Positions 9,233-30,549 of a stretch of 30,741 nucleotides of DNA are shown one piece after another. Made by a program: the position numbers and the translations under genes. The notes beneath the pieces are model-generated. The model ran no database searches and was not told where the DNA came from. It saw only the letters and a list, made by a program, of their open reading frames with translations. Source of the stretch: Octopus sinensis (lineage: Eukaryota); contig NW_021832516.1 in assembly GCF_006345805.1 (NCBI RefSeq), positions 1 to 30,741 of the forward strand. The letters run 5' to 3'. Position 1 is the first letter of the stretch. Each line of letters opens with the position of its first letter.

Positions 9233-9625
9233 AATAAATTAAAAGGTATAATGAATAAAAACTCTAATTCTTGAAAACAACTTTATAACATTCCCAAATT
9301 ATCATAAATTGAACATAAATATATATTCTTTTCTACTCTATGTTCAACGCCTGCAATTTTTTGGTGAGGTGTGGTGGGGGCAGTCGATTAGATCGACCCC
9401 AGTACGCAACTGGTACTTAATTTATCGACCCCGAAAGGATGAAAGACGAAAATACTGGTAAACATCAGGGCACCCAATGGTATATATGTGTATATTTTAT
9501 GCTATTGAATTTTACCCTTGGGGGCCCTGATGTTTTAATATATATTTATGTTCGATTTATATGGGAATGTTATAAAGTTGTTTTGATCAATTAGTGCGTT
9601 TATTGATTATACCTTTCAATTTATT
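9233..9625. repeat. Diverged fold-back repeat with a SINE inserted in the left arm
   Basis: 9233-9327 plus 9460-9477 is the reverse complement of 9518-9625; the 18-bp inner stem matches 17/18. Confidence 0.75.
9325..9452 (-). mobile_element. SINE family B 3' half (5'-truncated)
   Basis: CAGTCGATTAGATCGACCCCAGTACGCAACTGGTACTTAATTTATCGACCCCGAAAGGATGAAAG. Confidence 0.8.
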
Positions 9626-9664
9626 ACACACACACACACACACACACACATGTATATATATATA

Positions 9665-10195
9665 TTCGTAAACTCTCCCTATATATCACACGCTCACGTG
9701 GTCGCACCAATTGATCCTGTCATTTCTTATCACACACGAACTTCTCCACTGGACTTTCTATCTACCCTTTACGGATTCTCTTTTGGACATGTTACCCTCC
9801 GGCTGCACCTCACCTACCTACGGATCACCGTGGACGCTACTCTTGATGAAAAATCCTTGCAATACACCACGACGTCAAAAACCTTTGAACTTTACGTAAA
9901 ACTGTTATTATTATTATCATTACTTTCTTTATTCTTTCTAAACTTTCCTGTATTTTCTTTTATCTCCCCTACTTCTTCGCTCTCCTGTGTGACCCTTCTG
10001 TCCGGCAGTCAGTCGCTATGATAGATCGTTAGGCACTACACACATTTTTTTTCTCTCCTTGTTTTTTCTGTGTCCCTTTCTGTAGAAGAGCGCAGGCTTG
10101 AAACGTAAAAGACTTTTTCTATTCCTGAGCGTTATACTAATACATCTGTTTGTTTTGTACACCACCTGTCTTCGTCTTTTGTTTTTTTCGTTTTT
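9665..10195 (+). mobile_element. Putative non-autonomous Penelope-like element fragment (pLTR end, internal piece, pLTR)
   Basis: Starts with the terminal sequence TTCGTAAACTCTCCCTATAT, which ends the pLTR-like unit at 77-140, and ends in that unit; carries a hammerhead-like motif; no RT or GIY-YIG motif visible. Confidence 0.5.
10076..10111 (+). ncRNA. Minimal hammerhead-like variant (A6 to U)
   Basis: CUUU-CUGUAGA-A-GAGC-GCAG-GCUU-GAAACGUA-AAAG: helix I CUUU/AAAG, helix II GAGC/GCUU, ACGU palindrome. Confidence 0.35.
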
Positions 10196-10744
10196 TTGTT
10201 TTATATATATATATATATATCTGCATATGTATATGTATATATGCATATACGTGTGAGTGTATGTGTGTGTGTGTTTTTGCGTCTATGTGTTTTTGTGTCT
10301 AGGACAGTAACGACAGTACAAAATATAAACAGTAAAAGACAGAACAAGGAGAATAGCAGTAACACAAACAAGAAGGGCTGTTAAGCCGAACGAGATAAAA
10401 TTTTTTACGAACGCTATTTTTTGAGAACGGCGAGGGAGCAACAGAAAGTGTCGTTTCTACTTGAAGGAAGCCAGGACAGAAAGACAGTAGCAGAGTTCTC
10501 GTCACGGGTCAACGACGGGAGGGAGGAGGAGGAGTAAGAGAAAGGGAGAGAAAAAAGGGAATGGTTGTAGAGAAAAGAATGAAGAATGAGAGAGAGAGAG
10601 GGAGAGACAATAAGGTAGAAGAAAAGGAAAGCCAAAAGAATGAAGGCTGAGAAAGGGAGGGGGAGAGAAAGGTTAAGAGTGCGCATCATTATTACTGTCC
10701 TGTTTTTGTTACCATTTTTACCCCTTCGCAAAAAAATCTCAAAT

Positions 10745-11012
10745 TTTATTTAATTTGATTTTCGCGGGAAGGATTGTTTCATTAAAGTCATGTATCGCCT
10801 TGACCTTCGAAACGTGGAGTAGATGAAACAAAGGCGACTGAAGAAGGGGAATTTTCCTTGTTTTGTTTGTCCTGTACTCTATTTTTTCATTTTTTAAGAA
10901 AAATGTCCATTTCCTTGGTTTTGTGTTTATGTTTTCGTTTCTCATTGTGTTCGACGTGTTCGTCCTGTACCCATATATGCATGTATATATACATGTAGAG
11001 GTAGGTACGTAC
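10745..11012 (+). repeat. Interspersed pLTR-like repeat (second copy at 23995-24220)
   Basis: CCTTCGAAACG.GGAGTAGA.GAAACA..GG..A.TGAAGAAGGG and TGTACCCATATATGCATG shared with the 24 kb copy. Confidence 0.65.
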
Positions 11013-11224
11013 ATATATGTATGCATATGTATGTATATGTATGTATATGTATATATATGTATATGTATATATATATATGTATATATGTATTATGTGTATA
11101 TACGTATATATGTATATATATGTATATATGTATATATATGACAACAATTGCAGCGTGGAAGGTGTTTATAAGCCATTTAAGAAACACACAAAAGCCGTTC
11201 GATTCACTTCAACATTAAGTTTAA

Positions 11225-11274
11225 TTTGTCAAAATATTTTCGTCGCTAAAATCCGCGACCTGTTCACTGACAAA
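11225..11274 (-). ncRNA. Minimal type-I hammerhead motif, G3:C8 core variant
   Basis: Reverse complement of 11293-11342. Confidence 0.55.
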
Positions 11275-11292
11275 GTCCGTGCTGCATCGGAC

Positions 11293-11342
11293 TTTGTCAG
11301 TGAACAGGTCGCGGATTTTAGCGACGAAAATATTTTGACAAA
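11293..11342 (+). ncRNA. Minimal type-I hammerhead motif, G3:C8 core variant
   Basis: UUUGUCA-GUGAACA-G-GUCGC-loop-GCGAC-GAAA-AUAUUU-UGACAAA: 7-bp helix I, 5-bp helix II, palindromic AAAAUAUUUU helix III. Confidence 0.55.
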
Positions 11343-11585
11343 TTAAACTTAAATGTTGAAGTGAATCGAACGGCTTTTGTGTGTTTCTTAAATGGCTTAT
11401 AAACACCTTCCACGCTGCAATTGTTTTCGTTTCAGCACACGATCTCAGATCAAATTACTTGCTATGCGAGTACATCTCCGTAATGTATATATATGTATAT
11501 ATATATGTATATATGTACATATATGTATATATATATCTATATATATGTATATATATATATATGTGTGTGTGTTTGTGTGTATGTA

Positions 11586-11946
11586 TACTCTTTACTCTTT
11601 TACTTGTTTCAGTCATTTTGACTGTGGCCATGCTGGAGCACCGCCTTTAGTGGAGCAAATCAACCCCAGGACTTATTCTTTGTAAGCCTAGTACTTATTC
11701 TATCGGTCTCTTTTGCCGAACCGCTAAGTTACGGGGGACGCAAACACACCACCATCGGTTGTCAATCGATGTTGGGGGACAAACACAGACACACAAACGC
11801 ACACATATATATATACACATATATACGACAGGCTTCTTTCCGTTTCCGTCTACCAAATCCACTCACAAGGTGCCACGCAGTGGGACTGAACCTAGAACCA
11901 TGTGGTTGCTAAGCAAGCTACATAACCACACAGCCACTCCTTGCCC
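11586..11946 (-). mobile_element. SINE family A with internal deletion
   Basis: Closely matches 361-775; lacks the GGCTTTGGTCGGCCCGAGG segment. Confidence 0.85.
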
Positions 11947-11949
11947 CCT

Positions 11950-12300
11950 CGTTATCGAGTATGGCCATTGCACGAAGCTTAACTGTTACTGGTGCTGTGA
12001 CCGAATGTGACTTTTTAGCCCAGCCAAAGATCTACAATGTCTTGTACAGAATTGGCAACTAAAACCTTTACTGGTAATAGCCGGCTGTAGTTGTAACTGG
12101 GCTTCATGTACCTTTGCATGTCGTTTAAGTCCTCCTCCCGAATTACACTCTCTTCCACATGCCCAACAGATATGATTAGAATGGTGTGTTACACCACCAC
12201 CAGTGGCCAGGTTGTCACTCATCTGTCTCGCTTTATGACTACGAAGATGGCTCTTGAGTCCAGCTTTACACACACAGTCACACATGTGCCACATATATTT
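11950..12300 (-). pseudogene. 3' end of an RTE-like LINE: three C2H2-type fingers plus a short 3' UTR
   Basis: ORF 12294-11986 has CWACGRECNSGGGLKRHAKVH and CQFCTRHCRSLAGLKSHIRSQH (CX2CX3CX5LX2HX3-4H, RTE-like spacing, no TGEKP linkers); first finger degenerate; CTCG-ATAA-CGAG hairpin after the stop. Confidence 0.55.
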
Positions 12301-12717
12301 TTTTACTGAGGTGGGGAGATATTAAAATGTCATACAATAAACATAAAAACAAAATAATTTCCTGTCTTTTGTCTTATCCTCAATCTTGCCAACTTTTTCT
12401 TTTCTGTTTCGTTTTTTAATTGCTGGGTCTGGAATGAGGGCTCGTGCCTATAGCCTTCGAACGCTCCCATAGACTGGTGAGCTTGATGTCGTTAACGTTC
12501 ATCTTGAAATTTGCTGAGTCAACAACGGCAGGGAAGACAGGAACAGAGAGGAGGGGGAAATTCCAGGGATGGGAAGAAAGGGTAGGGGCCGATAGAGTAA
12601 GGGTAGAAGAGGCAAAGAAGACAGCGATTTCCGGGGACCCGAGAAAAAATGGAGCTTTCTGTGATCGACTCTACAAGAATCAGTTGGGCATGCATTTAGT
12701 GGAGGAGTCAAAGATAT

Positions 12718-12748
<31 letters not shown>

Positions 12749-12749
12749 A

Positions 12750-13680
12750 TCCACTATATCTCCATATTCTAGGAAGGTTACAAACTTCTCCGGAGGAACG
12801 TGTAACAAATTTGTTCGAATAGTGCATTATCAAAACCATTTTTGCACCACAACCCCCATTCGTACAGCTCAATTATCAACAGAATTGCTGTCTCTAATGG
12901 GCCTTTGTTCTTGAACAAAGCCACCCACACAAAGGTCAATGGCAATCCTAGCCACTTGTGAATATAGGCGTTACATTTCCATTCAATTGTCACAACCTGT
13001 GTCCCTGCAGTTTCACATAACATCACTGGCCTCTGCAGTCTGGGGTTCAAAGCTAATTGCAAACACCAAAGTTTGAACTTACCTGGTGGTAATGTATTTC
13101 TTTTTCTTGATCATTGAGAGTCCCTTGTCAGCCCCATTTTCTTTATCCTCATCCCCTCACTTCTATCATTAAACATTCCATCATCCAGCCTGCCTGCCCA
13201 GGCCCTTCACACGATCCTCTGGTATTGTAGTCATGACTTCTCTTACGATCTCATACTTTACTTCTTTCTGTCCTCCCTTAACGAGTGTTACCCTGTGCGG
13301 CTCATCAGCCTCGCCCAGCCTGTACAAGATTCTCACCGTTCACTTCTGATCCCTATCTAACAATACTTTCTTAGGTGAGTGGCTCTTCATTTTATGGTCG
13401 TGAGCCATTATCCCTTATAGGATGAATTCCATTCCAAGAATGAACCATATGACTGAAATTGTACACCCAGCTACAATTTCTCATCTCAAGCTTTTGCCAA
13501 GTCTGTGTGTAATCCTTCGATGTAAATTGCGTGTAGAACCTGCTGCAGTAATCCATCATCAGCTTGCAGACTTCTGGTGGGATCCAGAACAGCTCCGTGG
13601 TATACTCAAGCAGTTTGTGTAACACTGACTCAAAAGTCTTTGACAAACCAAGCCACAACTTCTCAGCTCTATTCGACCAA
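12750..13680 (-). pseudogene. Decayed RT fragment of an R2-group (Hero/NeSL-like) non-LTR retrotransposon
   Basis: WLGLSKTFESVLHKLLEYTTELFWIPPEVCKLMMDY..FTSKDYTQTWQKLE (cf. WLDLANAYGSVPH) and KCNAYIHKWLGLP; frameshifted. Confidence 0.75.
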
Positions 13681-13882
13681 TTCTATTCTTCTAAGAACAC
13701 AAATAAAAGAATTCTTGAACTTTGTTTTGTCACTCAAAAGTCATCATCATCATCATTATCTCCAACATCGACATTATCATCATCCCTATCATGACCAACA
13801 TTATCACCATCACCATTATCACTGATATCAACATCAGCATTATCATCACAACTGCCATCATAATCTTCATCACCTCACCCTG

Positions 13883-13887
<5 letters not shown>

Positions 13888-13960
<73 letters not shown>
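13888..13960. repeat. (CTA)n microsatellite
   Basis: About 24 CTA units. Confidence 0.95.
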
Positions 13961-13961
<1 letters not shown>

Positions 13962-13979
13962 GTACACAAAATCTACCAA

Positions 13980-14467
13980 TACATTGTTTTGTCTTGGTAT
14001 AAAAGATGGGCTACAGCAAATATTCTGCTCAATAGCACAGATTTGCTTGTCAGTTGTTTGACCATAACCAGTTGAGCATGTCTCTTAGTGGTTGACGATA
14101 TGTGCATCTCTGATCATGAGCAGAAGTAGTGGGGGAGCATCATAACCATGTGTTGAAAAGAATTCTTCGGGGGTTGGATAATTCCCCTTTGGAAACATGG
14201 GTGTTTTGTTCGTCATCCTTAAACAACCCTTATACAGGCACCATTTGAGTGGGATGGGCTACTCGACCAGAAAAAAAAAATTAACTGGGCCCCCACCTGC
14301 AAGGTCATGCGCTGTTTATCTTGATATGAGATCACCATGTCGCACAGATATGGTTTTGATGCATGTACCTAGTGTACCCTTATCAGACGGGCAGTCATGA
14401 TAGGTATACTGGGCTTCGTATATTTTACCCCAGTATCAATTTGATGGCATGCACTGCTCTCTCACTC
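13980..14467 (+). repeat. Unclassified ~550-bp (TAA)n-flanked interspersed repeat, 5'-truncated
   Basis: High similarity to 15404-15938 and 29930-30487; ends CTCTCACTC then (AAT)n. Confidence 0.9.
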
Positions 14468-14543
<76 letters not shown>

Positions 14544-15098
14544 TACGAACATCATCCTGAGCCAGTCGTTGAAGGTAAAAATGTCACTATCCTCCGAGAT
14601 TTTCCTGTCAACACTGACAGAATGATCCAGGTTAATGGACCGGACATAATGATTAAACACAGTGAAGAAAAGACTTGTACACTAATAGATGTAAGTGTTC
14701 TCACTGATAAAAATATATGTGTAAAGGAATTTGACAAACTAAGTAAATATAAGGACCTGGAAATTGAAATACGAAAGATGTGGCATCTTAAAACGAAAAC
14801 TGTTCCTGATATTGTGGGTGCCCTAGGTATGATATAAAAGGGATTTCAGAAACAATTAGATAAGATCCTTGGATAACCAATGTATCAGAGAAATCCAAAA
14901 GATTGTGCTGACAGGTACTGCCCACATCCTCAGAAAGACCCTATCCATTTAAATGTCCGTGTTGTATTACATGAAGATATTTCCCTACCTCTCCTCCCCA
15001 AGCTTTCCGTCATATTGTAACATCTCTTATCCTTCACTCGCCCCAGGACGCTGGGTGTGATCGGCAAGTGACTGTAACAAAGATGCAGATAAAAAGTA
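14544..15098 (+). pseudogene. 3' end of an R4/Dong-like REL-endonuclease LINE
   Basis: YEHHPEPVVEGKNVTILRDFPVNTDRMIQVNGPDIMIK..LIDVSV..KLSKYKDLEIEIRKMWHLKTKTVPDIVGALG (PD..D REL motif); 3' UTR ends in (TAA)n. Confidence 0.85.
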
Positions 15099-15166
15099 AA
15101 TAATAATAATAATAATAATAATAATTAATGATTTCTTTATTAACCACAAGGGTTTACCTGACAGCA

Positions 15167-15376
15167 GGATGGGCTACTCAACCTGAATAAAATTCTGTGC
15201 CCCACCTACAAGGTCATGCGCTGTTTATCTTGATATGAGACCACTATGCCGCACACATATGGTTGTGATGCATGTACCTGGTGTATACTTATCGGGTGGG
15301 TAGTTATGATGGGTATATTGGGTTCGTATATTTGTACCCCAGTGTCACTTTAATGGCATACGTTGATCTCTTACTC
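15167..15376 (+). repeat. 3' part of the ~550-bp (TAA)n-flanked repeat
   Basis: GGATGGGCTACTC..CCCCACCTACAAGGTCATGCG..CCCCAGTGTCACTTT. Confidence 0.85.
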
Positions 15377-15403
15377 AATAATAATAATAATAATGATAAT
15401 GAT

Positions 15404-15938
15404 AAATGCCCTGATGCAGTACCAGGCAGTGGCTCTCATGGCTGCTGATCTTAACTGATTTGAAGTGTTATCATGTACATTGTTTTGTCTTGGTATAAAA
15501 GATGGGCTACAGCAAATATTTTGCTCAATACCACAGATTTGCATGTCAGTTGTTTGACCGTAACCAGTTGAGCATGTCCCTCAGTGGCTGACAATATGTG
15601 CATCTCTGGTCACGAGCAGAAGTAGCCATGTGTTGAGAGGAATTGCTTGGAGTTTAGATAATTCACCTTTGGAAACATGGGTGTTTTGTTCATCATCCTT
15701 AAACAACCCTTATTCAGGGACCTTTTGAGTGGGATGGGCTACTCGACCTGAAGAAAATTGTGTGCCCCACCTACAATGTCATGCGGTGTTTGCCTTGATA
15801 TGAGATCACTATGTCGTGCACATATGGTTGTGATGTATGTGCCTGGTGTACCCTTATCAGACGGGTAGTTATGATGGGTATACTGGGCTTCGTATATTTT
15901 ACCCCAGTGTCACTTTGATGGCATGCACTGGTCTCTCA
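15404..15938 (+). repeat. ~550-bp (TAA)n-flanked repeat, near full length
   Basis: Starts AAATGCCCTGATGCAGTACCAGGCAGTGGC; (TAA)n on both sides. Confidence 0.9.
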
Positions 15939-15941
15939 AGT

Positions 15942-16000
<59 letters not shown>

Positions 16001-16002
<2 letters not shown>

Positions 16003-16190
16003 TAATCCCCTTTTTACTATAGACACAAAGCCAGTGTTTGGCTGGCACTTATTTTATCGACCGCGGAAGAATGAAAAGCGAAATAGACCGTGGTGGAATT
16101 TGAACTCAGAACATAACGATGGGCGAAATACGATTAAGCATTTCGTCCAGCGTGCTATCGATTCCGCTAGCTCGCCGCATTAAATTAATA

Positions 16191-16273
<83 letters not shown>

Positions 16274-16452
16274 TAATCCCCTTTTTACTATAGACACAAA
16301 GCCAGTGTTTGGCTGGCACTTATTTTATCGACCGCGGAAGAATGAAAAGCGAAATAGACCGTGGTGGAATTTGAACTCAGAACATAACGATGGGCGAAAT
16401 ACGATTAAGCATTTCGTCCAGCGTGCTATCGATTCCGCTAGCTCGCCGCATT
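16001..16452 (-). mobile_element. Two apparently identical tandem SINE family B copies (period 271 bp)
   Basis: 16001-16186 equals 16272-16457 by eye, separated by (TAA)n. Confidence 0.9.
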
Positions 16453-16454
16453 AA

Positions 16455-16458
<4 letters not shown>

Positions 16459-16522
<64 letters not shown>

Positions 16523-16746
16523 TACCACCACCACCACCACTACTACAACTACTACTGCATACTGCTACATGTTTGGTTATCTCCTCCAACAACTGGCATT
16601 GCCCTTGTTGCTGCAACCACCACAACCACCACCACCACCACCACCACCACCACCACCCCACCACTACGGTCATTATATCATCATCATACCTATTATAACA
16701 TTACAGTATTACTACCGCCACCACCGCCATAACTACCACCACCGCC

Positions 16747-16786
<40 letters not shown>

Positions 16787-16950
16787 CAACCACCACCATC
16801 ATCATCTTCATCATCATCATAAACAACAATGCTAACACTTCAACTACTATAATAGTCCATTACTACTACTACTACTATTACTACTACTACTACTACAACG
16901 GTTGCTACAACCGCCGCTGCTGCTGCTACTGCTGCTGCTGCTGCTGCATC
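16459..16950. repeat. Compound trinucleotide mosaic (TAA, CCA, CTA, CAA, CAT, CTG)
   Basis: Consecutive runs of different triplets. Confidence 0.9.
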
Positions 16951-17031
16951 TCTCAATGCCATTACAGTTTTACGGCCACCATAATGTTACGGATAAATTT
17001 ACAATCAGCCGATGAAAAACGGTGAGTGACG

Positions 17032-17063
<32 letters not shown>

Positions 17064-17173
17064 TTCACACACACACACACACGCATTCATACATATATAC
17101 ATACACACACATTCTTGTACACATGCATGCGTGTTTATACATATACCTGTATATTCTTGTGTGCATATATATA

Positions 17174-17209
<36 letters not shown>

Positions 17210-17401
17210 TGTGTGTGTGTATGTGTGTGTGTTTATATGAATGTATACATACATATACGCATATATATGTGTGATATATGTGTGTGTGTCAAGGATATAC
17301 ATACGTACACACATACATACACTCACGCATACACACACATATACATACATATATATAAACACGCATACACACACACACGTATATATACATACACATACAC
17401 A

Positions 17402-17444
<43 letters not shown>

Positions 17445-18145
17445 CACAAGCACACACACACACGTGTATATACATACACACACGTACACTCATACATATA
17501 CACATAAACATATACATACATATATAAAAGAAAATCCCCTTTCTTTAAGTATTACGAAGCTACTCGCCATTGCCGCTAGGTTTATGTTTTCTTTTCCCAG
17601 TTGAAGAGTAAATCCCAAATAATTACAGGTATTTGCCTACGTCAACCAATACATCGCCATCTACCTGTATCACACACACGCGATATTTTATAACTTTCAC
17701 CCTGAATAGAATTTCAACGTTCAAACGGGTGGAACGGAATGTTGAAGCTGGTGTGGTGGTGGTGGTGGTGGTGGTGGCAATAATGTGGTTGGTAGTATAG
17801 GAGGGGGGTGATTGTAGAACTATTATCAGGGGTTGTGATGGTGGCGGCGGCGGCGGAGGTGGTGCTGGTGATGTTGATGGTAGTGCTGCCAACAAAATGG
17901 TGGCGTGCTGATATCGGTGGTGACGGTTGTACTAGTAGCAGCAGCAGCGTTAATTTTGTTTAACCCCAGGCCAACAGTAATTGGTGGACTCAGGAACGGG
18001 AGATGGACTCCGGCCGTGACCACACTTGTCTTTTTATAGGTCCACGTTGCTATTTCTAGCAATTCCATATACCACAAAGAAATTTCGTCTTCTGCTCACG
18101 TGGTGTCAATTCTGTCGTTATTTTGTATAGATGCGCATATATATA

Positions 18146-18198
<53 letters not shown>

Positions 18199-18560
18199 AT
18201 ATATGTGTGTATATATGTATAAATGTGCGCGAGTGTGTAATGTGTGTGAGAGAACTTGGAGAATGAAGGAAATTGTATTAATTTTATGGAGGGGTGGTTA
18301 GAGGAACCGTTCGATGAATGCATATGCGTTTGTGACCATAGAGACATGTATGTATGTATGTATGTATGTATGTATGTATGTATGTATGTATGTGTGTGTG
18401 TGTATAACGATATCTGTCTATCTGTCTATATATATATATGAATATATATATAAGGGCATAAAATGTGAAACAAGGTAGGAGAACATAGTACTCGAATACC
18501 AGAGGTAGAGTAATATGCTTTATTACTAAAGCTTTAAAAACATTACAAAAATATCACAAA

Positions 18561-18602
18561 AACTGCTACTCGGAGTTTCCCGTTCCCGTTCATCAAGCAG
18601 TT
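18561..18602 (-). ncRNA. Compact type-I hammerhead-like motif (C3 to U)
   Basis: AACUGC-UUGAUGA-ACG-GGAA-CGG-GAAA-CU-CCG-AG-UA-GCAGUU: 6-bp helix I, GUA cleavage triplet, one mismatch in helix II. Confidence 0.55.
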
Positions 18603-18740
18603 ATGATCAAAAATGGAATAAAAACATCTATTCCTTTCTTGATTTGTGATATTTTCGTGATGTTTTTGCAGATTTAATAATAACAATAATAACAATATAT
18701 GAAAATATATATATATATACACATGTATATATATAGATAT

Positions 18741-18775
<35 letters not shown>

Positions 18776-18825
18776 GAACGTATATATATACATACATACA
18801 CACACATGTATATAGATACATACTT

Positions 18826-18896
<71 letters not shown>

Positions 18897-19402
18897 GCAT
18901 GCGTACCTCTAAATACATATCTCTTTCATGATCATAAACTGTAAAAGAGCCTTAATTGGAATACATAATTACATAAATTATGCGAGGAAATGCACACAAA
19001 ATGCGTGAGTTCGTGTGTGAATGTGGAAGAGAGAAAGAGAGACAGACAGACACACAGACAGACGGATGGACGGACAGGTAGACCGACAGAATTCATTCAT
19101 ATTCACAAAAATTACAATTTTCAAAATTTTAAGTAGAAGGAAATGTTAATTATATGCTTGAAATTATTTCGTGATAACAATAAAGAAATTCCTATATCGG
19201 TATGTATACGTATAAACACATACAAATACGTAATATATATATATATATATATACAAAAGCAATAAAGATTCAAGTTAATTTAAATGAATTTACTTGAATA
19301 TGGTACCTAACTTAGATGCACCAAAAAGAAACTATACTGTTTTAACAATACAGTAATGTGGGGTGATTATAAGCGAGAAAGAAGCAACAAGAATGGATAG
19401 GT

Positions 19403-19493
19403 TTTTAGTACAATCGTTTCATACAAGGACAGGCTTTATTAAAAGTTGCAAAAATTACAGCATATAAACGTGTCCCGTACTCATCAGCTAAAA
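19403..19493 (-). ncRNA. Type-I hammerhead ribozyme motif with canonical core
   Basis: UUUUAG-CUGAUGA-GUACGGGACA..UGUCCUUGUAU-GAAAC-GAUU-GUA-CUAAAA: perfect 6-bp helix I, ~10-bp helix II, GUA cleavage site. Confidence 0.75.
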
Positions 19494-19680
19494 TACATGT
19501 GAGTTCTCTAGACATCCTAGTGGTTGAGGCTATACTCATGAAGTGATGTAGATAATTAAGTAACATAAACAGATTTCCAAACTTTAATGAACTTTGGAAA
19601 TCTGTTTATGTTACTTAATTATCTACATCACTTCATGAGTATAGCCTCAACCACTAGGATGTCTAGAGAACTCACATGTA

Positions 19681-19772
19681 TTTTAGCTGATGAGTACGGG
19701 ACACGTTATATGCTGTAATTTTTGCAACTTTTAATAAAGCCTGTCCTTGTATGAAACGATTGTACTACAAAA
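19681..19772 (+). ncRNA. Type-I hammerhead ribozyme motif with canonical core (second arm)
   Basis: Same as the minus copy with one extra C in helix I; predicted cleavage after A19764. Confidence 0.7.
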
Positions 19773-19890
19773 CCTATCCATTCTTGTTGCTTCTTTCTCG
19801 CGTATATATATATATTATATACAAATACGTACATATATATGTATGTACATATATACATTATATAAGTATATATGTGTATATACATACATA

Positions 19891-19932
<42 letters not shown>

Positions 19933-19935
19933 ATA

Positions 19936-20005
<70 letters not shown>

Positions 20006-20556
20006 TATGTAATATATATCATATATGTATATATATCATATATGAATGTAATATGTGCATAAATATACGTATATGTATGTATGCATATGAAAAATAATGA
20101 GAAATGGATGAAAATGCATTTAATTTTATGTATATACAAATGTAATTCAATAAGACTAACTATTTTTTACGGAAGGGAACATTTTTCATATTATAGTAAT
20201 AGCAAAGAAAAAAAACGAAAAATTTTAACTGAACCGATGCATTCGTTGAACGGATTTATTTTTTTTTTAAATAACCAAAAAATATCAATGTAGGTGTTCT
20301 GAAGGTGAGTCTTACATACAGAACACAGAGGGAAGAGAGGGAAACGATCACATGTTAGTTGGTGGCTTTCACATGAAAAAATATTCAAGAAATAGATTGT
20401 AATGTATGTCGTCTGTATATGGATATACAAACATACATACATATATATATATATATACATACATATATATATAATATAATATATAGCAATAATGATAACA
20501 TAATCGAATATTAAATGATATATATGCATACATAAATATGTGTGTGTTTGTATTAT

Positions 20557-20770
20557 TGTTAAATTTTTTGGCGCAAGGCCAACAAATTTTGAAAGAAGGG
20601 ACCATTCGATTTCATTGATTCCAGTGGACAACAGGAATTTATTTCATCGACCCTGGAAAGATGAAAGGTAAAATCGACCTCGGTCGAATTTGAAATCAGA
20701 ACGTAAAGAACCGTAGGAAATGCCGCTAAACAATTTGTCCAGAGGGTCGACAATTCTCTCAGTTCGCTTT
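20557..20770 (-). mobile_element. SINE family B, diverged
   Basis: TTTGGCGCAAGGCC..TCATCGACCCTGGAAAGATGAAAGGTAAAATCGACCTCGG..ATTTGAAATCAGAACG. Confidence 0.75.
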
Positions 20771-20892
20771 ATGTATGTGTGTGGGTGTATAAAGTATATG
20801 CATATATGTACGTATATATGTATATATGCATGTATGTATGTTACATATATATGTATGCAGTATATACCTATATCTATATATCTATCAATCTA

Positions 20893-20928
<36 letters not shown>

Positions 20929-21076
20929 AGAGAGAGAGAGAGAGATTGATAGATAGATAATGTATATGTATATATATATATATATATACACATATGCACT
21001 ATCTATCTATCTATCTATCTCTCTCTCTATATATATATATATACACACACACACATTATCTATCTATCTCTATCTA

Positions 21077-21150
<74 letters not shown>

Positions 21151-21520
21151 GTACATACATACATAAGTGTATATTTATATGTATATATCATTGCTATATG
21201 TGTGTGCATACATATGTTTATGTCATTATTATTATTATCAGTACCATTATCATCATCATTATCATCGTTATTATTATTGTGGTCGAGTCCGTCTGCAGCT
21301 ACTCAGTTCACAACTGGTCCGAAGATCCTAGGCCCCCACAGGTGGAGCTGCAAGTGACTGACTCAACCAAAATAGAACATAATCTTCATCTCTACCACGG
21401 TTTTGAGGACTCTTTGTACCAACTATTAACACTAAATGATTATATATATATATAATGTAGGTGGCTCATTACCGAGTAAAACCTACAGGCGAATTTATAA
21501 ACAAAGGCACAAAATAGTAC

Positions 21521-21625
21521 CAGCATTGCTAGAAAGAAGAGTCGAAAACGACTAAATTAGCCACAAAGTTAATTGCTTTTTGTGGCTAATTGAGTCGCTT
21601 TTGACTCTTGTTACTAGCAATGCTG
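21521..21625. repeat. Diverged inverted repeat, 47-bp arms (42/47), 11-nt spacer
   Basis: 21521-21567 vs 21579-21625. Confidence 0.85.
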
Positions 21626-21640
21626 CTGCTAATTTGTACC

Positions 21641-21752
21641 TAGGTTCGAAACGTTAAAGACTTTTTCACTTCCCGAGCGTTATACTAATACATCTGTTTG
21701 TTGTCTACACCACCTGTCTTCGTCTTTTGTTTTTTGTTTCTTTGTGAATTCT

Positions 21753-21757
<5 letters not shown>
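21641..21757 (+). repeat. pLTR-like 3' fragment (family of 10.1 kb)
   Basis: TAGGTTCGAAACGTTAAAGACTTTTTC..GAGCGTTATACTAATACATCTGTTTG..TTCTCCC then (TA)n. Confidence 0.7.
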
Positions 21758-21804
<47 letters not shown>

Positions 21805-21862
21805 TATACATGTATACATATATATCGATACATATATTACATATACATATATATATCCACAC

Positions 21863-21910
<48 letters not shown>

Positions 21911-22195
21911 ACGTATATAGTATATATATACACATATATATATACGGCATATATATATATATGCATGTATATATATATTATACATGCATATATATACATA
22001 TATATAATATACATCACATATTATACATATATATATATACAATATATATACATATATATACATATATATATACATATATGCATATATATATACTATATAT
22101 ATACATACATATATATATACATACATATATATATACATAATACAATATATATATACATACATATATATATACATAATACATATATATATATATAT

Positions 22196-22230
<35 letters not shown>

Positions 22231-22285
22231 GTATATACATATATATATATATTATGTATATATATACATATATATATATAAAACC
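21755..22285. repeat. Large (TA)n/(TACA)n low-complexity block
   Basis: About 530 bp of degenerate TA repeat; similar blocks at 17040-17520, 19800-20090 and 24290-24800. Confidence 0.95.
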
Positions 22286-23024
22286 ACCTCATATCCTCCC
22301 CCACGCCACTAAAACTTTCAGGCACATGGAACCCACGTACGTTCTTCAGGCTGCAGGAATACCATCGGACTTCAAATACTGGACCGAATCTAAAAACGGG
22401 GCGAAAGAAACCCAATACTGGGACGGATTATGTGGAAGATAGCATTAGGCTGACTACGCAGAATGTAAATCTCGAGATGCGAAGATCGAATGGTGTAAAA
22501 TCGGATGGAAAAAATGTTTGGGAAATTTTTTTTTTTTTTCTTAAATAAACATTTTGATGAAAAAAGTTTATGAGAAGAAAGGAATGATAGAACAGATTGA
22601 AAAAATCGGGGTATGTACAAATAATATACAAAACGTATAAAATAAGGAGAACTGTTGTTTTTTTTAAATAGGGGCATGTACAAATATAATTTACAATATA
22701 CAAATATAAAGAAAATCTAAATAAAGAGAGAATATGAAAAATATATGCATATAATAATAATATTAAAATATATATCGAAATATAAAATATTTGAAATATA
22801 ATAAAATAAAAGGTAATAAAAATATGAATATGAGAAAAAACTACAAGTATATAAGTAAATCAATTGTTGACGAGTTCGTCAGGAAGAGTGATATCTTCCG
22901 ATTTTTTAAAAGAAATTTTTGCATATGTTTACAACTACTAAAAATTTCGGATCGGGAGTTCAAGATCGAGTTTGGTATCTTTGATCTAAATAGGATATGT
23001 GGCCTTTCTGCCAAATACAGCCGG

Positions 23025-23122
23025 CATTTATTAGAACCATTTATGTATGGTGTAGATTCTTCTATAATCTTCCAATTAATTATAGAAAATTCTACACCAT
23101 ACACAAATGGTTCTAATAAATG
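23025..23122. repeat. Inverted repeat, 44-bp arms (41/44), 10-nt spacer
   Basis: CATTTATTAGAACCATTT..TCTATAAT / ATTATAGA..AAATGGTTCTAATAAATG. Confidence 0.9.
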
Positions 23123-23265
23123 GGTGAATGTATGTAATTCACACACCTATACACATTTCTAGATAGCTAGATAGATACAGATATGGGGATACCATATACA
23201 AATGTATACATACATCTCCCTCTCTCTCTCTCTCTCTCTCTCCTCTCTCTCTATCTCTATATATA

Positions 23266-23321
<56 letters not shown>

Positions 23322-23603
23322 AGATCCAGGGATCGAGGTGTAGCAAGAAAGTTAGCTTCAAGCAATCCGTAGTACATTTAAAAAAAAAAACTTTCAGGGA
23401 TAATAGAGATTTATTGAGACGACAGGTTGTAGATTTTTTCGTGTCGAAGAACGTTTATCTGAATGTGTGTGTATATATATATATATATATATAATATATA
23501 TATATTATATATATATATATATATATGTACGTATGTATGTATGTATATATTTAAATCAATAAATGGTGGGGTTGTGTTAACCGCATGTGGAGAAATGGTA
23601 GGC

Positions 23604-23848
23604 GAGGAAAAATTATAAAAGGGCAGAATGCTAAATTGAAGGTAAATTTTAATAAAAATGGGTGTATGGAAAATTTTTAAAAATTAAAAAATTAAAAAAA
23701 TATATTAAAAAAATATTTTTTTAAATATTATTTTTTTTAATATATTTTTAAATATATTTTAATATATTTTTAAATTTTTTAAAATTTTCCATACACCCAT
23801 TTTTATTAAAATTTACCTTCAAATTCTGTCTTTTTATAATTTTTCCTC
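23604..23848. repeat. AT-rich fold-back repeat, ~100-bp arms
   Basis: GAGGAAAAATTATAAAA..GAAGGTAAATTTTAATAAAAATGGGTGTATGGAAAATTTT is mirrored at 23770-23848; 6-nt indel between arms. Confidence 0.9.
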
Positions 23849-23910
23849 TCCTGTATATATATATATAAATATAATATAATATAAATAATATATAAATATA
23901 TGCATATATA

Positions 23911-24220
23911 CATACATATGTGTACATACCTACATCAATATGTATATATACATGCATATATGGGTACAAGACATCAAAAAACTTTGAACATAATACCTTC
24001 GAAACGCGGAGTAGACGAAACAGGGGCAAATGAAGAAGGGCAATATTCCTTGTGTTGTATGTCTTGTACTCTGTTTTTTCAGTGTTTGAAAAAAAAGTTC
24101 GTTTCCTTGTTTTTGTTTTTATGTTTTCGTTTCTCATTGTTTTCAATGTTTTTTTGATGTCTTGTACCCATATATGCATGTGTATATACATGTAGATGTA
24201 GGTATGTACATATATGTATG
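23911..24220. repeat. pLTR-like copy with its 3' end duplicated in inverted orientation at its 5' side
   Basis: 23911-23990 is the approximate reverse complement of 24138-24220; ~147-nt spacer belongs to the 10.8 kb family. Confidence 0.85.
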
Positions 24221-24695
24221 TATACATAATCTATATATTATTTATATTATTATATGATCGAACACCACGCATCCTTTTCCCAGTAAGTTATATATATACA
24301 TTATATATATATATATATATAATATATATATATATATAATATATATATATTTGTATATATATGTGTATGTATATGTATATATGTGTATATATATGAGTAT
24401 GTATATGTATATATATTGTATGTATATGTATATATATGTGTATGTATATGTATATATATATGTGTATATATGTGTACATATATATGTATGTGTGTATATA
24501 TATATGTATATATATGTAGATATATATGTATATATATGCATATATAAATATGTATATATTATGTGTATGTTTATATTATGTGTATATTTATATGTGTGTG
24601 TGTATATATGTATGTATATGTATATATATGCATATATGATGCATGTATATGTGTATATATATATGTATACATATGTATGTATACACATATACACG

Positions 24696-24736
<41 letters not shown>

Positions 24737-25169
24737 TGCAAGTTTGCATGTATGTGTATATGAATGTAAGAATATATGTATATGTATGTATACACACATA
24801 AACACATGCATGCACGCATATCCTTAATTCCTATGCTCCAAATGACCAGAGTGTCTGGGGCTATAAACATCTGCCAATTCTTTCTTAAGATTCAAAGGAT
24901 GATGGCTGAAACCAAATCCTTTCCTATACCACCCTTTTACCAATTTGGTGACCAGTCAAAATTTTCTCTTATGCTTAAAACGGGAAATAGAAGAACATAC
25001 ATACATGCAAAGATATGTATATATACATACGTACATATATGCATAATTACATACACTGGAACTATAGAAATCGGTTAAATTTTGCATAAGCTTATCATTT
25101 GAATATATGTGAGCATGTCTAGATATGTAGCTATATGCATGAGAATACATACATAAAACAAAACATACA

Positions 25170-25307
25170 AATCTGAGCATATACATACATACTTACATAC
25201 ATATATATATATACATACATACATACATACATACATACATACATACATACATACATACATACATACATGCATACATACATACATACATACATACATGCAT
25301 ACATACA

Positions 25308-25341
<34 letters not shown>

Positions 25342-25345
25342 CATA
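25170..25345. repeat. (CATA)n microsatellite
   Basis: Long CATA array. Confidence 0.95.
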
Positions 25346-26120
25346 CAAATAAAAATACTATGTGGTTGATGTTGAAATTCCAATGAAGGAACCGTGGATC
25401 TAGGTTAGAAACCGGTTCTTTCTCTATTGGCAAGAAATCTTGAAATAAACTGGCTAATGATATACGTACATACATACACATACACACGCACACATATCTA
25501 TTTAAACATACATATAAACATACATATAGAGGGCAAAAGAAAATCAACTGCGTAGAAGTAATGTGAAATCAACCGCCCTTGTGTCTCGCATCACCAGTTC
25601 TGCTTACCAAACGTGGCCCACTTGGCACCGTGCATTCGGCGCGTCGCAATGGTTGCGATATGCGGTTTTCATTTGTTCCTATTATCATAAGGGGTTAGGA
25701 TTAGGTAACAATGCCAGGAATGCGCGGGTTCGATCTCAAAAAAGGACAAACGAAATCGATTTGCAATTCTAAATACCAAGAATTGGAAATAGACTGAGCA
25801 GAGAGTAAGAATTTGTAAACCATTCCAGGGAATCTTCATTTTACGTTCCCTGGTGAGTGTATGCACCCAGTGACATATGCACGTGCAAAATAAATACACG
25901 CACACACATAGGCAAAACACACACACGTACACATATACGTACATATGTGCTGTCTCTCTCTGTCTCTCATTAAATATATATATATATATATATAATTAAT
26001 TAATAAGGGTGAGAGAATTAGATACTAATTTAATAGTATATCTATTCAACACCAAGTGGCCTAGTGCTCCGAGAAACCTGGATTATTATAATATTTTATA
26101 ACATATTATAATATTTTTAC

Positions 26121-26277
26121 AAAATAAATATAAGAGAGTGGTCACTATATGGCTCACTCTAGCACCAGTTAATCCAAAAGGTTTCAACCACGAAAATACA
26201 TGTATTTTCGTGGTTGAAACCTTTGGATTAACTGGTGCTAGAGTGAGCCATATAGTGACCACTCTCTTATTTATTTT
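26121..26277. repeat. Spacer-less palindrome, ~78-bp arms
   Basis: Centre ACA|TGT at 26200/26201; two small indels; left arm continues uniquely to ~26000. Confidence 0.95.
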
Positions 26278-26322
26278 TATTATAATATATATATATATAT
26301 ATAATATATGCATGTATGTATG

Positions 26323-26354
<32 letters not shown>

Positions 26355-26371
26355 GTGTGTATGCATGTATG

Positions 26372-26429
<58 letters not shown>

Positions 26430-26511
26430 TATATATTATATATATATATATATATATATGTGATATATTATGTTTATATATGTGTATGTGTTATTGTGTC
26501 TGTGTTTATAC

Positions 26512-26702
26512 CCCCATCACCGCTTGACAACTGATGTTGGTGTGTTTACGTCCCTGTAATATAGCCGTTCGAAAAAAGAGACCGATAGACTAAGTACTAG
26601 GCATACAAAGAATAAGTCCTGGGGTCGACTTGTTCGACTAAAGGTGGTGCTTCAGTATGGCCGCAATCAGACGACTGAAACAATTAAAAGATAAAAAGAA
26701 AA
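26512..26702 (+). mobile_element. SINE family A 3' half
   Basis: CGCTTGACAAC.GATG.TGGTGTGTTTACGTCCC..GAATAAGTCCTGGGGTCGA..GACTGAAACAA. Confidence 0.85.
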
Positions 26703-26703
26703 C

Positions 26704-26747
<44 letters not shown>

Positions 26748-27105
26748 CTATATACACGAACGTATATTTATGCATATTTATATGTAAATATGTATATATA
26801 CATATATACATATTTACATATATGTATTTATACACATGTGTGTATATTTATGTGTATATATGTATGTATAGAAAGAGTATGAAGGGTTTAGTACACTTGT
26901 GCTCTAAACGAATAGGTACGCTGGTTACGTGCTATTATTGGACTCCCGTTAGGTTCCAAGATCTCAGCCAAGGCTGGATCTAGGGACCTGTGTTAGGGTA
27001 TCGTTACAACAGGTATATATTATATTAGAGGGAAAATCAAAACCAAGACAGAAAGAGTATTTCAAGTCATTTACAATTATTTAATTAGGGTAAGATGGAA
27101 TTGAA

Positions 27106-27172
27106 GTCTTTCAACCGTTTCTGGGATAACCCAAGTGGGAGGTTAGCATGTCCGTATTCCGTCATCAGAGAC
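27106..27172 (-). ncRNA. Degenerate type-I hammerhead motif
   Basis: GUCU-CUGAUGA-..-GAAAC-GGUU-GAA-AGAC: canonical core and 4-bp helix I, but U16.1 replaced by A and helix II imperfect. Confidence 0.4.
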
Positions 27173-27212
27173 AAGTACAGTTCTATATTTAAGAGATGAG
27201 AAATTATGTACA

Positions 27213-27297
27213 TTATTTACATTTGACGGATATTTGTCCTCATCTTGTTTGTTAACAACAAACAGGATGAAGACAAATATCCGTCAAATGTAAATAA
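27213..27297. repeat. Inverted repeat, 41-bp arms (39/41), 3-nt spacer
   Basis: 27213-27253 vs 27257-27297. Confidence 0.9.
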
Positions 27298-27380
27298 AGT
27301 AAATAGTATCAGAGACTAGGTATGAATATTTTAGACGTGGAAAATTCACAGTAATATATATATATATATAATTACTGTTT

Positions 27381-27652: not shown

Positions 27653-27667
27653 GTATATATATATATA

Positions 27668-27810
27668 ATTGCAGCGTGGAAGGTGTTTATAAGCCATTTA
27701 AGAAACACACAAAAGCCGTTCGATTCACTTCACATTTAAGTTTAATTTGTCAAAATATTTTCGTCGCTAAAATCCGCGACCTGTTCACTGACAAAAATCC
27801 GTGCTGCATC
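27668..27810 (-). repeat. Solo copy of the 11.1 kb palindrome arm, including the G3:C8 hammerhead motif (27746-27795)
   Basis: Nearly identical to 11147-11288; the hammerhead segment is identical to 11225-11274. Confidence 0.9.
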
Positions 27811-27905
27811 TGAGAAAGTAACAGTTAGTTCGTCATATATATGTACGTATGTATGCGTGTATGTATGCATACACACATACATACGTACATGTATGTATGC
27901 ATACA

Positions 27906-29870: not shown

Positions 29871-29929
29871 AACAACAACAACGGTAATAATAATGAAAAG
29901 AAACCATAAATAATAATAATAATAATAAT

Positions 29930-30487
29930 AAATGCCCTGATGCAGTACCAGGCAGTGGCTCTCATGGCTTCTCATCTTAACTTATTGGAAGTGTTATCAT
30001 ATACATTGTTTTGTCTTGGTATAAAAGATGGGCGACAGCAAATATTCTGCTCAATACCACAGACTTGCTTGTCAGTTGTTTGACCATAACCAGTTGACCA
30101 TGTCCCTTAGTGGCTGACGATATGTGCATCTCTGATCAGAAGCAGAAGTAGTGGGGGAGCATCATAGCTGTGTGTTGAGAAGAATTCTTGGAGGTTTGGA
30201 TAATTCACATTTGGAAACATGGGTGGTTTGTTCAACATCCTTAAACAATCCTTATTCAAAGACCTTTTGAGCGAGATGGGTTACTTGACCAGAAGAAAAT
30301 TCTAAGTGGACCCCACCTGCAAGGTTATGCGTTATTTATCGTGATATGAGATCACTATGTTGTGTACATATGGTTGTGATGCCTGTGCCTGGTGTTCCCT
30401 TATCAGACGAGTAGTCATGATGGGTATACTGGACTTCGTATATTTTACCCCAGTGTCACTTTAATGGTATGCACAGCTCTCTCACTC
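29930..30487 (+). repeat. ~550-bp (TAA)n-flanked repeat, full length
   Basis: AAATGCCCTGATGCAG...CTCTCACTC between (TAA)n runs. Confidence 0.9.

Positions 30488-30549
<62 letters not shown>

Follow-up and report, generated by a model that had tools for sequence, protein, structure and literature searches.

Why should a short stretch of octopus DNA carry one inverted duplication after another, drawn from sequence families unrelated to each other? The window analysed here is an entire 30.7-kb unplaced contig (C8987; 30,741 nucleotides, nt) of the Octopus sinensis assembly, which comprises 2.72 Gb in 13,516 contigs. Its G+C content is 24-48%, it is without a credible coding frame, and runs of four or more TA units, written (TA)≥4, make up about 10% of the DNA between 9 and 27.7 kb. 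We conclude that most of its palindromes probably consist of two short copies, set back to back, of the 3' end of a Penelope-like element (PLE) or of a non-coding relative, inserted in TA-rich DNA. A GIY-YIG endonuclease domain C-terminal to a reverse transcriptase defines the endonuclease-bearing members of this group.

Inverted duplications in the window

Self-BLAST of the window found 11 inverted repeats, either close or self-overlapping, whereas none occurred in any of the 30 dinucleotide shuffles used as a control, and a repeat search added the palindrome at 11.1 kb. A first-pass annotation of this DNA had listed nine inverted duplications, named here by their position in kb, and all nine exist:

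9.2 kb: arms 9233-9327 and 9537-9625, 84% identical over 95 nt
11.1 kb: 11141-11425, arms about 93% identical
18.5 kb: short arm of just 41 nt (18643-18683)
19.4 kb: 19368-19806, arms 97.5% identical
21.5 kb: 21505-21641, arms 81% identical
23.6 kb: 23600-23852, arms 83.5% identical
23.9 kb: 23876-23994 and 24136-24250, 88% identical
26.1 kb: 26091-26309, arms 89.5% identical
27.2 kb: 27205-27305, arms 89% identical

We take the 18.5-kb palindrome to be real because an independent genomic copy (L085) shows the same layout.

Much of what that annotation said about layout was borne out. The families bear no sequence relation to each other, and each has hundreds to thousands of counterparts (about 190 to more than 3,600 first-look genome candidates, the source of all copy numbers below, which are mostly lower bounds). 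The pairing of one long with one shorter arm can be stated more sharply: it is at its outer end that the short arm lacks a defined terminal segment, the tail. Outer ends were said to lie in or next to TA-rich microsatellite, and 13 of 20 do so when an end is counted if it lies no more than 12 nt from (TA)≥4 (binomial test against a background of 0.15-0.24; p = 5e-7 to 1.3e-4); the exceptions are the 9.2-kb and 27.2-kb cases. Copies elsewhere in the genome mostly abut (TA)n, with a minority at other AT-rich sites. The claimed density of one insertion per 3 kb comes from an unplaced contig made only of repeats and permits no extrapolation.

The arms as probable 3' ends of Penelope-like elements

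Alignment of copies identifies each arm as the terminal few hundred bases of a longer, high-copy element. In three families (11.1, 19.4 and 23.6 kb) the longer copies reach open reading frames (ORFs) with a GIY-YIG domain. The pair of putative reverse transcriptase and GIY-YIG was read only in the 19.4-kb family, and the other two gave the GIY-YIG part only. Because the ORF reads toward the outer end of the arm in every case, the arms are 3' ends whose sense direction points outward. The best protein relatives of the transposon ORFs are from molluscs, including Argonauta and Solemya; these relatives and the SINE content (SINE, short interspersed nuclear element) would fit a cephalopod genome.

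The 19.4-kb family is represented in the window by the following features:

19254-19588, minus strand: long arm, a 3' end resembling a pseudo-long terminal repeat (pLTR), with a 122-nt tail (19254-19371)
core at 19487, minus strand: hammerhead-like motif with a full core in the long arm, reading outward
19590-19801, plus strand: short arm ending ..CTCGC and adjoining (TA)n, with a hammerhead-like motif at 19681-19770

The end of the short arm is an alternative terminus, TATAAGCGAG, that other copies use too. All six palindromic copies of this family have exactly one tail, of 122 nt, and their turning points are spread across about 50 nt. The arm corresponds to the final 340 nt or so of an element that is tandem in L031, where direct repeats spaced 4614-4616 bp bracket the ORF in a pseudo-LTR arrangement; the same arrangement occurs on C9907. 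Minus-strand frames of the 4614-bp unit in L031 contain FDIxxYYxSI, PMGSxDS and YGDD, followed by ..VIYKCT..YIGCT. An intact ORF of 890 amino acids (aa) is present in L039 (L039:343-3015, minus strand), again with a reverse-transcriptase-type motif series that includes YxDD and with the motif VIYKCT..YIGCT.

Searches of the element's own ORFs against Pfam, NCBIfam and PDB sequences returned no reverse-transcriptase family. In the L039 ORF an Asn-rich, low-complexity linker of about 200-250 aa lies between the reverse-transcriptase and GIY-YIG parts, and this linker may be the reason for the missing Pfam domain. Homologues of the ORF carry the PF01541 GIY-YIG domain (P0001, P0068). The structural model of another homologue, 40% identical (P0002; predicted local distance difference test score, pLDDT, 84), finds its best PDB matches among telomerase reverse transcriptases (E = 2e-8), followed by retron, group II intron, LINE-1 and R2 enzymes. 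The reverse-transcriptase fragment has 9,640 candidates at 67-100% identity. The same 4.6-kb tandem, with identical broken frames, lies on a chromosome-scale contig (C1:160881600-160888600) and on a small one (C9907:63300-70300), and the pair is probably a haplotig or an assembly duplicate.

The other two families with GIY-YIG ORFs contribute five features:

11141-11284, minus strand: tail-less arm of the 11.1-kb family; its outer end, ..CAATTG, abuts (TATG/TA)n at 10973-11140
11285-11483, plus strand: tailed arm of the 11.1-kb family; tail of roughly 60-70 nt (about 11426-11483, ..CATCTCCGTAA), abutting (TA)n at 11486-11562
27667-27834, minus strand: single-arm, tail-less copy of the 11.1-kb family; it starts (TA)n|AATTGCAG and runs inward past the turning point of the palindromic copies
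23550-23728, minus strand: tailed arm of the 23.6-kb family; tail of about 48 nt (23550-23599), adjoining (TA)n at 23472-23550
23730-23853, plus strand: tail-less arm of the 23.6-kb family, ending ..CCTCTCCTG and adjoining (TA)n

Followed inward, single-arm copies of the 11.1-kb family lead to a GIY-YIG ORF on the minus strand (L071:2668-3066; PF01541, 26.1 bits against a cut-off of 22.6; motif VYQIKCQEGAC..SYIGET). A GIY-YIG ORF also lies upstream of the 23.6-kb arm (L077:1953-2750; PF01541, 23.4 bits; motif LIYVLTCAGC..YVGQT). Both domains are above the Pfam cut-off and have Cys residues inside the core. At L077 the 3' end of the element lacks a tail and the inverted copy on its 5' side has one. 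Such an inverted, truncated copy beside the insertion is thus found with a GIY-YIG-bearing element, as well as in many solo head-to-head copies.

Each 11.1-kb palindrome has one tail, in eight of eight copies, and the same one-tail pattern holds for the 23.6-kb family in the window, in L075 and in the ORF-bearing L077. The tail-less 11.1-kb arm shares its truncation point with seven further palindromes of the genome and with the copy at 27667 in the window. Centres of this family are confined to a span of about 10 nt. In some the arms match right up to the junction (GCATCTC|GAGATGC in L049), and others have 3-11 nt of filler or unequal inner ends. An inner end of GCATCT plus an extra C is found in six independent short copies, four palindromic and two single (L065, L068, L049, L056, L061 and L066; compare window positions 11275-11292), and long copies read A, T or G at that base.

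Families assigned by their insertion signature

Craig et al. 2021 (PMC8557442) described strong 5' truncation in PLEs, partial tandems and an adjacent, inverted, 5'-truncated copy; the tail is often at one end only, and insertions are biased toward microsatellites, notably (TA)n, from a cause that the authors left undefined. An inverted 5'-truncated partner together with a one-sided tail is present in six of the families studied here. Three of these are the families with ORFs, and the 18.5-kb, 23.9-kb and 26.1-kb families share the signature:

18460-18683, minus strand: 18.5-kb family; long-arm tail of about 60 nt (18460-18516), short arm stopping at the tail boundary, (TA)n on both sides
23876-24290, plus strand: 23.9-kb family; tail-less short inverted arm 23876-23994, long arm 23995-24290 with a 37-nt tail (24254-24290)
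25993-26285, unstranded: 26.1-kb family; head-to-head piece of a 535-bp tandem unit, long arm 25993-26200, short arm 26203-26285, outer ends in (TA)n

The 18.5-kb family has at least 2050 candidates, many of them inverted pairs, and one of its palindromes (L085:800-988) has the same single tail. That palindrome is nested in the TA-rich 3' region of a 23.9-kb-family element; PLE-type elements thus insert into the TA-rich tails of earlier ones.

The tail of the 23.9-kb family adjoins (TA)n from 24289 on, and the TA-rich stretches further in belong to the element. A second window copy lies at 10690-11059, and the one-tail pattern is seen in the window, in L084 and in L086. The genome holds at least 3689 candidates, and among the best 40 of them 35 begin at TACCTTCGAAACG (window 23994). 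Despite this shared start, longer copies exist (window 10690-10802, L085). After the 11.1-kb family this is the second with a discrete 5' end.

The unit of the 26.1-kb family, 535 or 536 bp long, forms head-to-tail arrays (L076, L089), some of which stand head-to-head. In L076:244-3501 (C3:149953243-149956500) two such arrays face each other 102 nt apart. The outer end of the L076 array and the window copy have the same terminus adjoining (TA)n. The unit contains a hammerhead candidate (L076:1224-1306) that aligns with the full Hammerhead_1 model (positions 1-45), scoring 30.1 bits where the cut-off is 34 (E = 5.5e-6 for a 161-nt stretch). Its loop II has an insert of 40 nt, and its helix III reads GAAAC-AAUU-GUC. 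The window copy is the hammerhead-free part of the unit.

A PLE origin of the palindromes, which the first-pass annotation had proposed, is thus supported for three families by GIY-YIG ORFs and for three more by the signature. Its expectation that the arms map to elements with reverse-transcriptase and GIY-YIG domains holds, as regards GIY-YIG, where the arms are the 3' termini of ORF-bearing elements (11.1, 19.4 and 23.6 kb), the other families being unlinked to such ORFs. The 27.2-kb case is the 3' end of a SINE, and the 21.5-kb and 9.2-kb cases are unassigned. The arrangement itself is not new to the literature, where the inverted truncated copy, the one-sided tail and the microsatellite bias are all on record (PMC8557442). 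This is no new class of insertion; it is PLE biology in a new host.

Cases outside the pattern

Four further features complete the picture of the window:

27176-27306, minus strand: 27.2-kb fold-back of the 3' end of a tRNA-derived SINE; long arm 27176-27256, short arm about 27257-27293/27306
26871-27354, minus strand: family A (27.1 kb), one copy, split by 27176-27306 and bordered by (TA)n on either side
21505-21755, plus strand: 21.5-kb palindrome (21505-21641) joined to the 5'-truncated 3' end (21642-21755) of a (TA)n-ending family
9233-9625, unstranded: 9.2-kb arms separated by a SINE fragment (about 9340-9450) and a small hairpin

The 27.2-kb fold-back sits inside the family A element and not in (TA)n. 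It is flanked by a 13-bp target-site duplication with two mismatches (cATCAGAGACaAG at 27163-27175 and tATCAGAGACtAG at 27307-27319). Longer genomic copies of this SINE show a tRNA-like head and an (AAT)n body, and on this ground a Tc1/mariner reading of its end (TA|CAGT) was dropped. The tail is on one arm, the same form as in the PLE cases, which raises the question of whether PLE machinery moved this SINE. Family A itself has at least 2442 candidates at 81-88% identity, inverted pairs among them.

The 21.5-kb palindrome proper had no other match among the scored candidates, and only the adjoining 115 nt belong to a family. That family (21642-21755) has at least 961 candidates and further window copies at 64-144 and 10094-10242. 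At least 189 candidates at 82-88% identity were found for the 9.2-kb family, mostly single arms with a few inverted pairs.

Two inverted repeats lie beyond the nine listed earlier. The hairpin at 23025-23122, 98 bp long and 86% complementary, stands away from (TA)n and may be a miniature inverted-repeat transposable element (MITE). At 1947-2017/2236-2306 two inverted SINE fragments lie 219 nt apart, an ordinary pair with no bearing on the palindromes described here. At 15944-16524 a 271-bp unit, (TAA)n together with a SINE-like segment, is duplicated in tandem with 98% identity, and it has relatives at 13979-14533, 15383-16006 and 29909-30549.

Hammerhead motifs

Hammerhead motifs reading outward had been reported at 11.1, 18.5, 19.4 and 27.1 kb, and a complete core was found at 19.4 kb only. 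A descriptor (CUGANGA, helix II, GAAA, short helix III, UH, helix I), which gives 0.01 hits per shuffled window, matched only the two 19.4-kb arms, both in the outward, sense direction (CUGAUGA...GAAAC-GAUU-GUA). Even this motif reaches just 11.4 bits with Hammerhead_1 (E = 7), with a fold z-score of 0.4 and a minimum free energy no better than that of shuffles. The sites at 11.1 kb and 18.5 kb lack the hammerhead core (GUGAACA and CUUGAUGA), the 18.5-kb box (18576-18597) being degenerate. At 27.1 kb the family A consensus reads CUGAUGA..GAAAC-AGCU-GUA; in the window copy (core at 27168) the motif has degenerated, with CUGAUGA and GAAAC retained and helix III broken; family A has no Rfam match. 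The link between palindromes and hammerheads is therefore weak, with one full-core motif in the window that is insignificant by Rfam.

At gathering scores Rfam matched nothing in the whole window, and at E ≤ 10 it found no hammerhead in 18440-19800. Across the window, matches at E ≤ 10 were hairpin-shaped look-alikes of microRNAs (miRNAs) and small RNAs. The sub-threshold miRNA models include MIR2863 (82.8 bits, 26140-26260), MIR8562 (112.7 bits, 19471-19703), mir-297 (59 bits, 17201-17271) and many others. We read these matches as reflections of the palindromes and of TG/TA microsatellites, not as miRNA genes. Canonical Hammerhead_1 matches do occur elsewhere in the genome.

In the 11.1-kb and 23.9-kb families, inspection by eye found no hammerhead to which the clustering of 5' ends could be ascribed. 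Ribozyme cleavage was considered for the 23.9-kb family start TTCGAAACG. The same reading of a 21.6-kb family start, TTCGAAACG, was ruled out, as other copies read through this point.

How the palindromes form

Target-site duplications surround whole palindromes in L066 (9 bp, ATCTTCAAT), in L061 (about 30 bp) and at 27.2 kb in the window (13 bp). As they bracket the entire structure, each palindrome comes from a single integration, which upholds the earlier proposal of an origin at that step. Centres vary among copies of one family, so that the palindromes are independent events and not copies of a palindromic master. The tail-less arm starts at a recurrent internal AT-rich site. Because the same terminus is also the end of independent single-arm copies (L009, L022, window 27667), it behaves as an alternative start site and not as a stop.

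Biochemical work offers a route to such structures. Frangieh et al. 2024 (PMC11167929) found that a purified Anolis PLE protein cleaves AT-rich DNA on both strands and extends both, beginning reverse transcription at two internal sites that lie one tail length apart. We propose that in the octopus the PLE protein would likewise cut both strands of AT-rich or (TA)n DNA, and that both 3'-OH ends, as in vitro, would prime reverse transcription on element RNA. With one cut end at each of the two start sites, two complementary DNAs (cDNAs) would grow toward each other and be joined where their templates end. Non-coding RNAs may use the same machinery. For the 11.1-kb family the sequence suggests a template that would be a discrete, short, capped RNA of about 215 nt starting inside the pLTR at ..AGAUGCAGCAC, and the untemplated extra C at the inner ends would then be the copied cap; for the 23.9-kb family the corresponding capped 5' end would lie at TACCUUCGAAACG. 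The association with (TA)n may combine target preference with micro-homology to AU-rich tracts in the RNA.

The first-pass annotation had favoured fold-back. In a true fold-back a single nick would yield a single cDNA, whose 3' end snaps back on itself and is copied toward the flank, so that a hairpin becomes established as a palindrome; the short arm would halt before the tail because the cDNA start is still occupied by protein or RNA. This is a live rival, since one mechanism would explain the strict one-tail rule and would do so better than dual priming. It also agrees with both arms covering the same element stretch, which is unlike LINE-1 twin priming, with a truncated outer end that is always on the short arm, and with palindromic or micro-homologous joins at some centres (TGTACA in L015, a 2-nt overlap in the window). 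We nonetheless consider fold-back unlikely. Several centres are perfect and loopless (L049, L015), which is impossible for an intramolecular hairpin, and others have the filler or unequal inner ends expected of separate ends that were joined. Taken together, these centres fit two independently made cDNAs and do not fit a snap-back that needs a loop. The tail-less end, as a start shared with single-arm copies, and the extension of both strands seen in vitro (PMC11167929) argue in the same direction.

Other explanations fare less well. Palindromes might have arisen after insertion, by template switching during replication or by cruciform processing in (TA)n, or in assembly from chimeric long reads: (TA)n can pair with itself and breaks easily, the window is itself unplaced, and the young palindromes are almost perfect. 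Such an origin is very improbable, however, as chromosome-scale contigs carry the same architecture at numerous loci with individual centres, the duplications enclose whole palindromes, and arm identities of 81-97.5% imply arms that aged in place; nor is a one-tail rule expected from random template switching. MITEs or Foldback-type DNA transposons with TA as their target, like Tc1/mariner-derived elements, would account for the hairpin-like shapes, for the TA-rich flanks, for the scores of MITE-derived miRNA models in Rfam (MIR2863, MIR8562) and for a SINE end that begins TA|CAGT. Against this, single arms make up the majority of copies in each family and lead into long elements that carry GIY-YIG ORFs, the centre varies between copies, the inequality of the arms follows a fixed pattern, the duplications are of 9, 13 and about 30 bp rather than TA, and no transposase ORF was seen. 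This explanation is excluded for six families and is the least credible of all overall.

Several points also weigh against an origin in PLEs and dual priming. A PLE ORF is linked to only three of about ten families; the 18.5-kb, 23.9-kb and 26.1-kb families are assigned by architecture, with a near-threshold hammerhead in addition at 26.1 kb. At 27.2 kb a SINE end is flanked by a 13-bp duplication that resembles those of LINEs (long interspersed nuclear elements), and the 21.5-kb and 9.2-kb cases have no assigned parent element. Pfam finds no reverse-transcriptase domain in the element ORFs, and our assignment of a putative reverse transcriptase draws on motifs and on the modelled fold of a homologue, not on the element's own protein. 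Tails here measure 37-122 nt, longer than the published 30-40 nt. Exactly one tail per insertion is unexplained if both ends prime alike, as they do in vitro. The idea of a capped transcript derives from sequence features, and (TA)n is presumed to have been present at the targets before insertion.

Implications

How PLEs form tandem and inverted structures, and why they prefer microsatellites, has been stated as unresolved (Craig et al. 2021, PMC8557442; Frangieh et al. 2024, PMC11167929). This genome holds thousands of very young solo insertions, 99-100% identical, whose junctions can be read base by base, and it may provide a clean natural data set for the unsolved mechanism of PLE integration. 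Models of that mechanism would have to account for one tail per insertion, for recurrent AU-rich start sites, and for clustered inner ends with an extra C.

A bolder possibility, which we regard as unlikely, is that short capped solo-pLTR transcripts, such as the putative RNA of about 215 nt in the 11.1-kb family, are the main PLE template here, and that a PLE dimer routinely turns them into perfect palindromes of 300-700 bp in (TA)n. If true, MITE-like hairpin loci would be mass-produced by a retroelement across many unrelated families, perhaps with a tRNA-derived SINE among them. The telomerase-related enzyme of PLEs might also seed or lengthen the flanking (TA)n and not merely target it.

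There are practical consequences as well. Annotation pipelines will mistake loci of this kind for MITEs or miRNA hairpins, and assemblies can break at them. Transcription of the palindromes, should it occur, would yield long double-stranded RNA.

Comparison with known systems

The palindromes share with MITEs and Foldback elements long inverted repeats that can form hairpins, high copy number and TA-rich flanks. They differ in being retroelement 3' ends with varying centres, unequal arms, duplications of 9-30 bp and no transposase found. In LINE-1 twin priming, too, both ends of a staggered break prime synthesis, and an inverted segment lies within one pair of duplications. There, however, the upstream part of the RNA is inverted with little overlap, whereas both arms here cover the same 3' region in every case, so that a process of the LINE-1 type is ruled out; the enzyme, moreover, is a GIY-YIG PLE and not a LINE of the apurinic/apyrimidinic endonuclease (APE) type.

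Endonuclease-bearing PLEs, with the clades Penelope/Poseidon, Neptune, Nematis and Naiad, were reportedly described by Evgen'ev and Arkhipova in 2005 and by Arkhipova in 2006, and again by Craig et al. 2021 (PMC8557442). The octopus elements resemble them in a putative telomerase-like reverse transcriptase with a C-terminal GIY-YIG domain, tandem pLTRs and heavy 5' truncation, and further in the abutting inverted truncated copy, the one-sided tail, the AT-rich or (TA)n targets and, in some families, a hammerhead-like motif. In contrast to them, the copies here are mostly solo termini of a few hundred bases, the hammerhead candidates have a 40-60-nt insert in helix II and fall below the Rfam cut-off, and the ORF of one family has an Asn-rich linker of about 200 aa between its domains.

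Non-LTR retrozymes of animals are tandem hammerhead repeats of 150-1000 bp that have been proposed to be non-autonomous derivatives of PLEs (bioRxiv 10.64898/2026.07.22.740005). To judge from its sequence, the 26.1-kb family resembles them, with a 535-bp head-to-tail unit and a candidate type I hammerhead in which helix III is 2 bp long and the loop is a palindromic AAUU. It departs from them in a hammerhead score of 30.1 bits, below the cut-off of 34, and in arrays that stand head-to-head with their outer ends in (TA)n.

The closest biochemical parallel is PAc, the Poseidon element of Anolis (PMC11167929). Its start site in vitro has no homology to the cut DNA, whereas tail-less junctions here lie at AU-rich tracts adjoining (TA)n, where micro-homology is suggested; and it shows no difference between strands in vitro, whereas each insertion here uses both sites once. 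What the two would have in common is cleavage and extension of AT-rich DNA on both strands from two start sites, which would provide a route to head-to-head copies.

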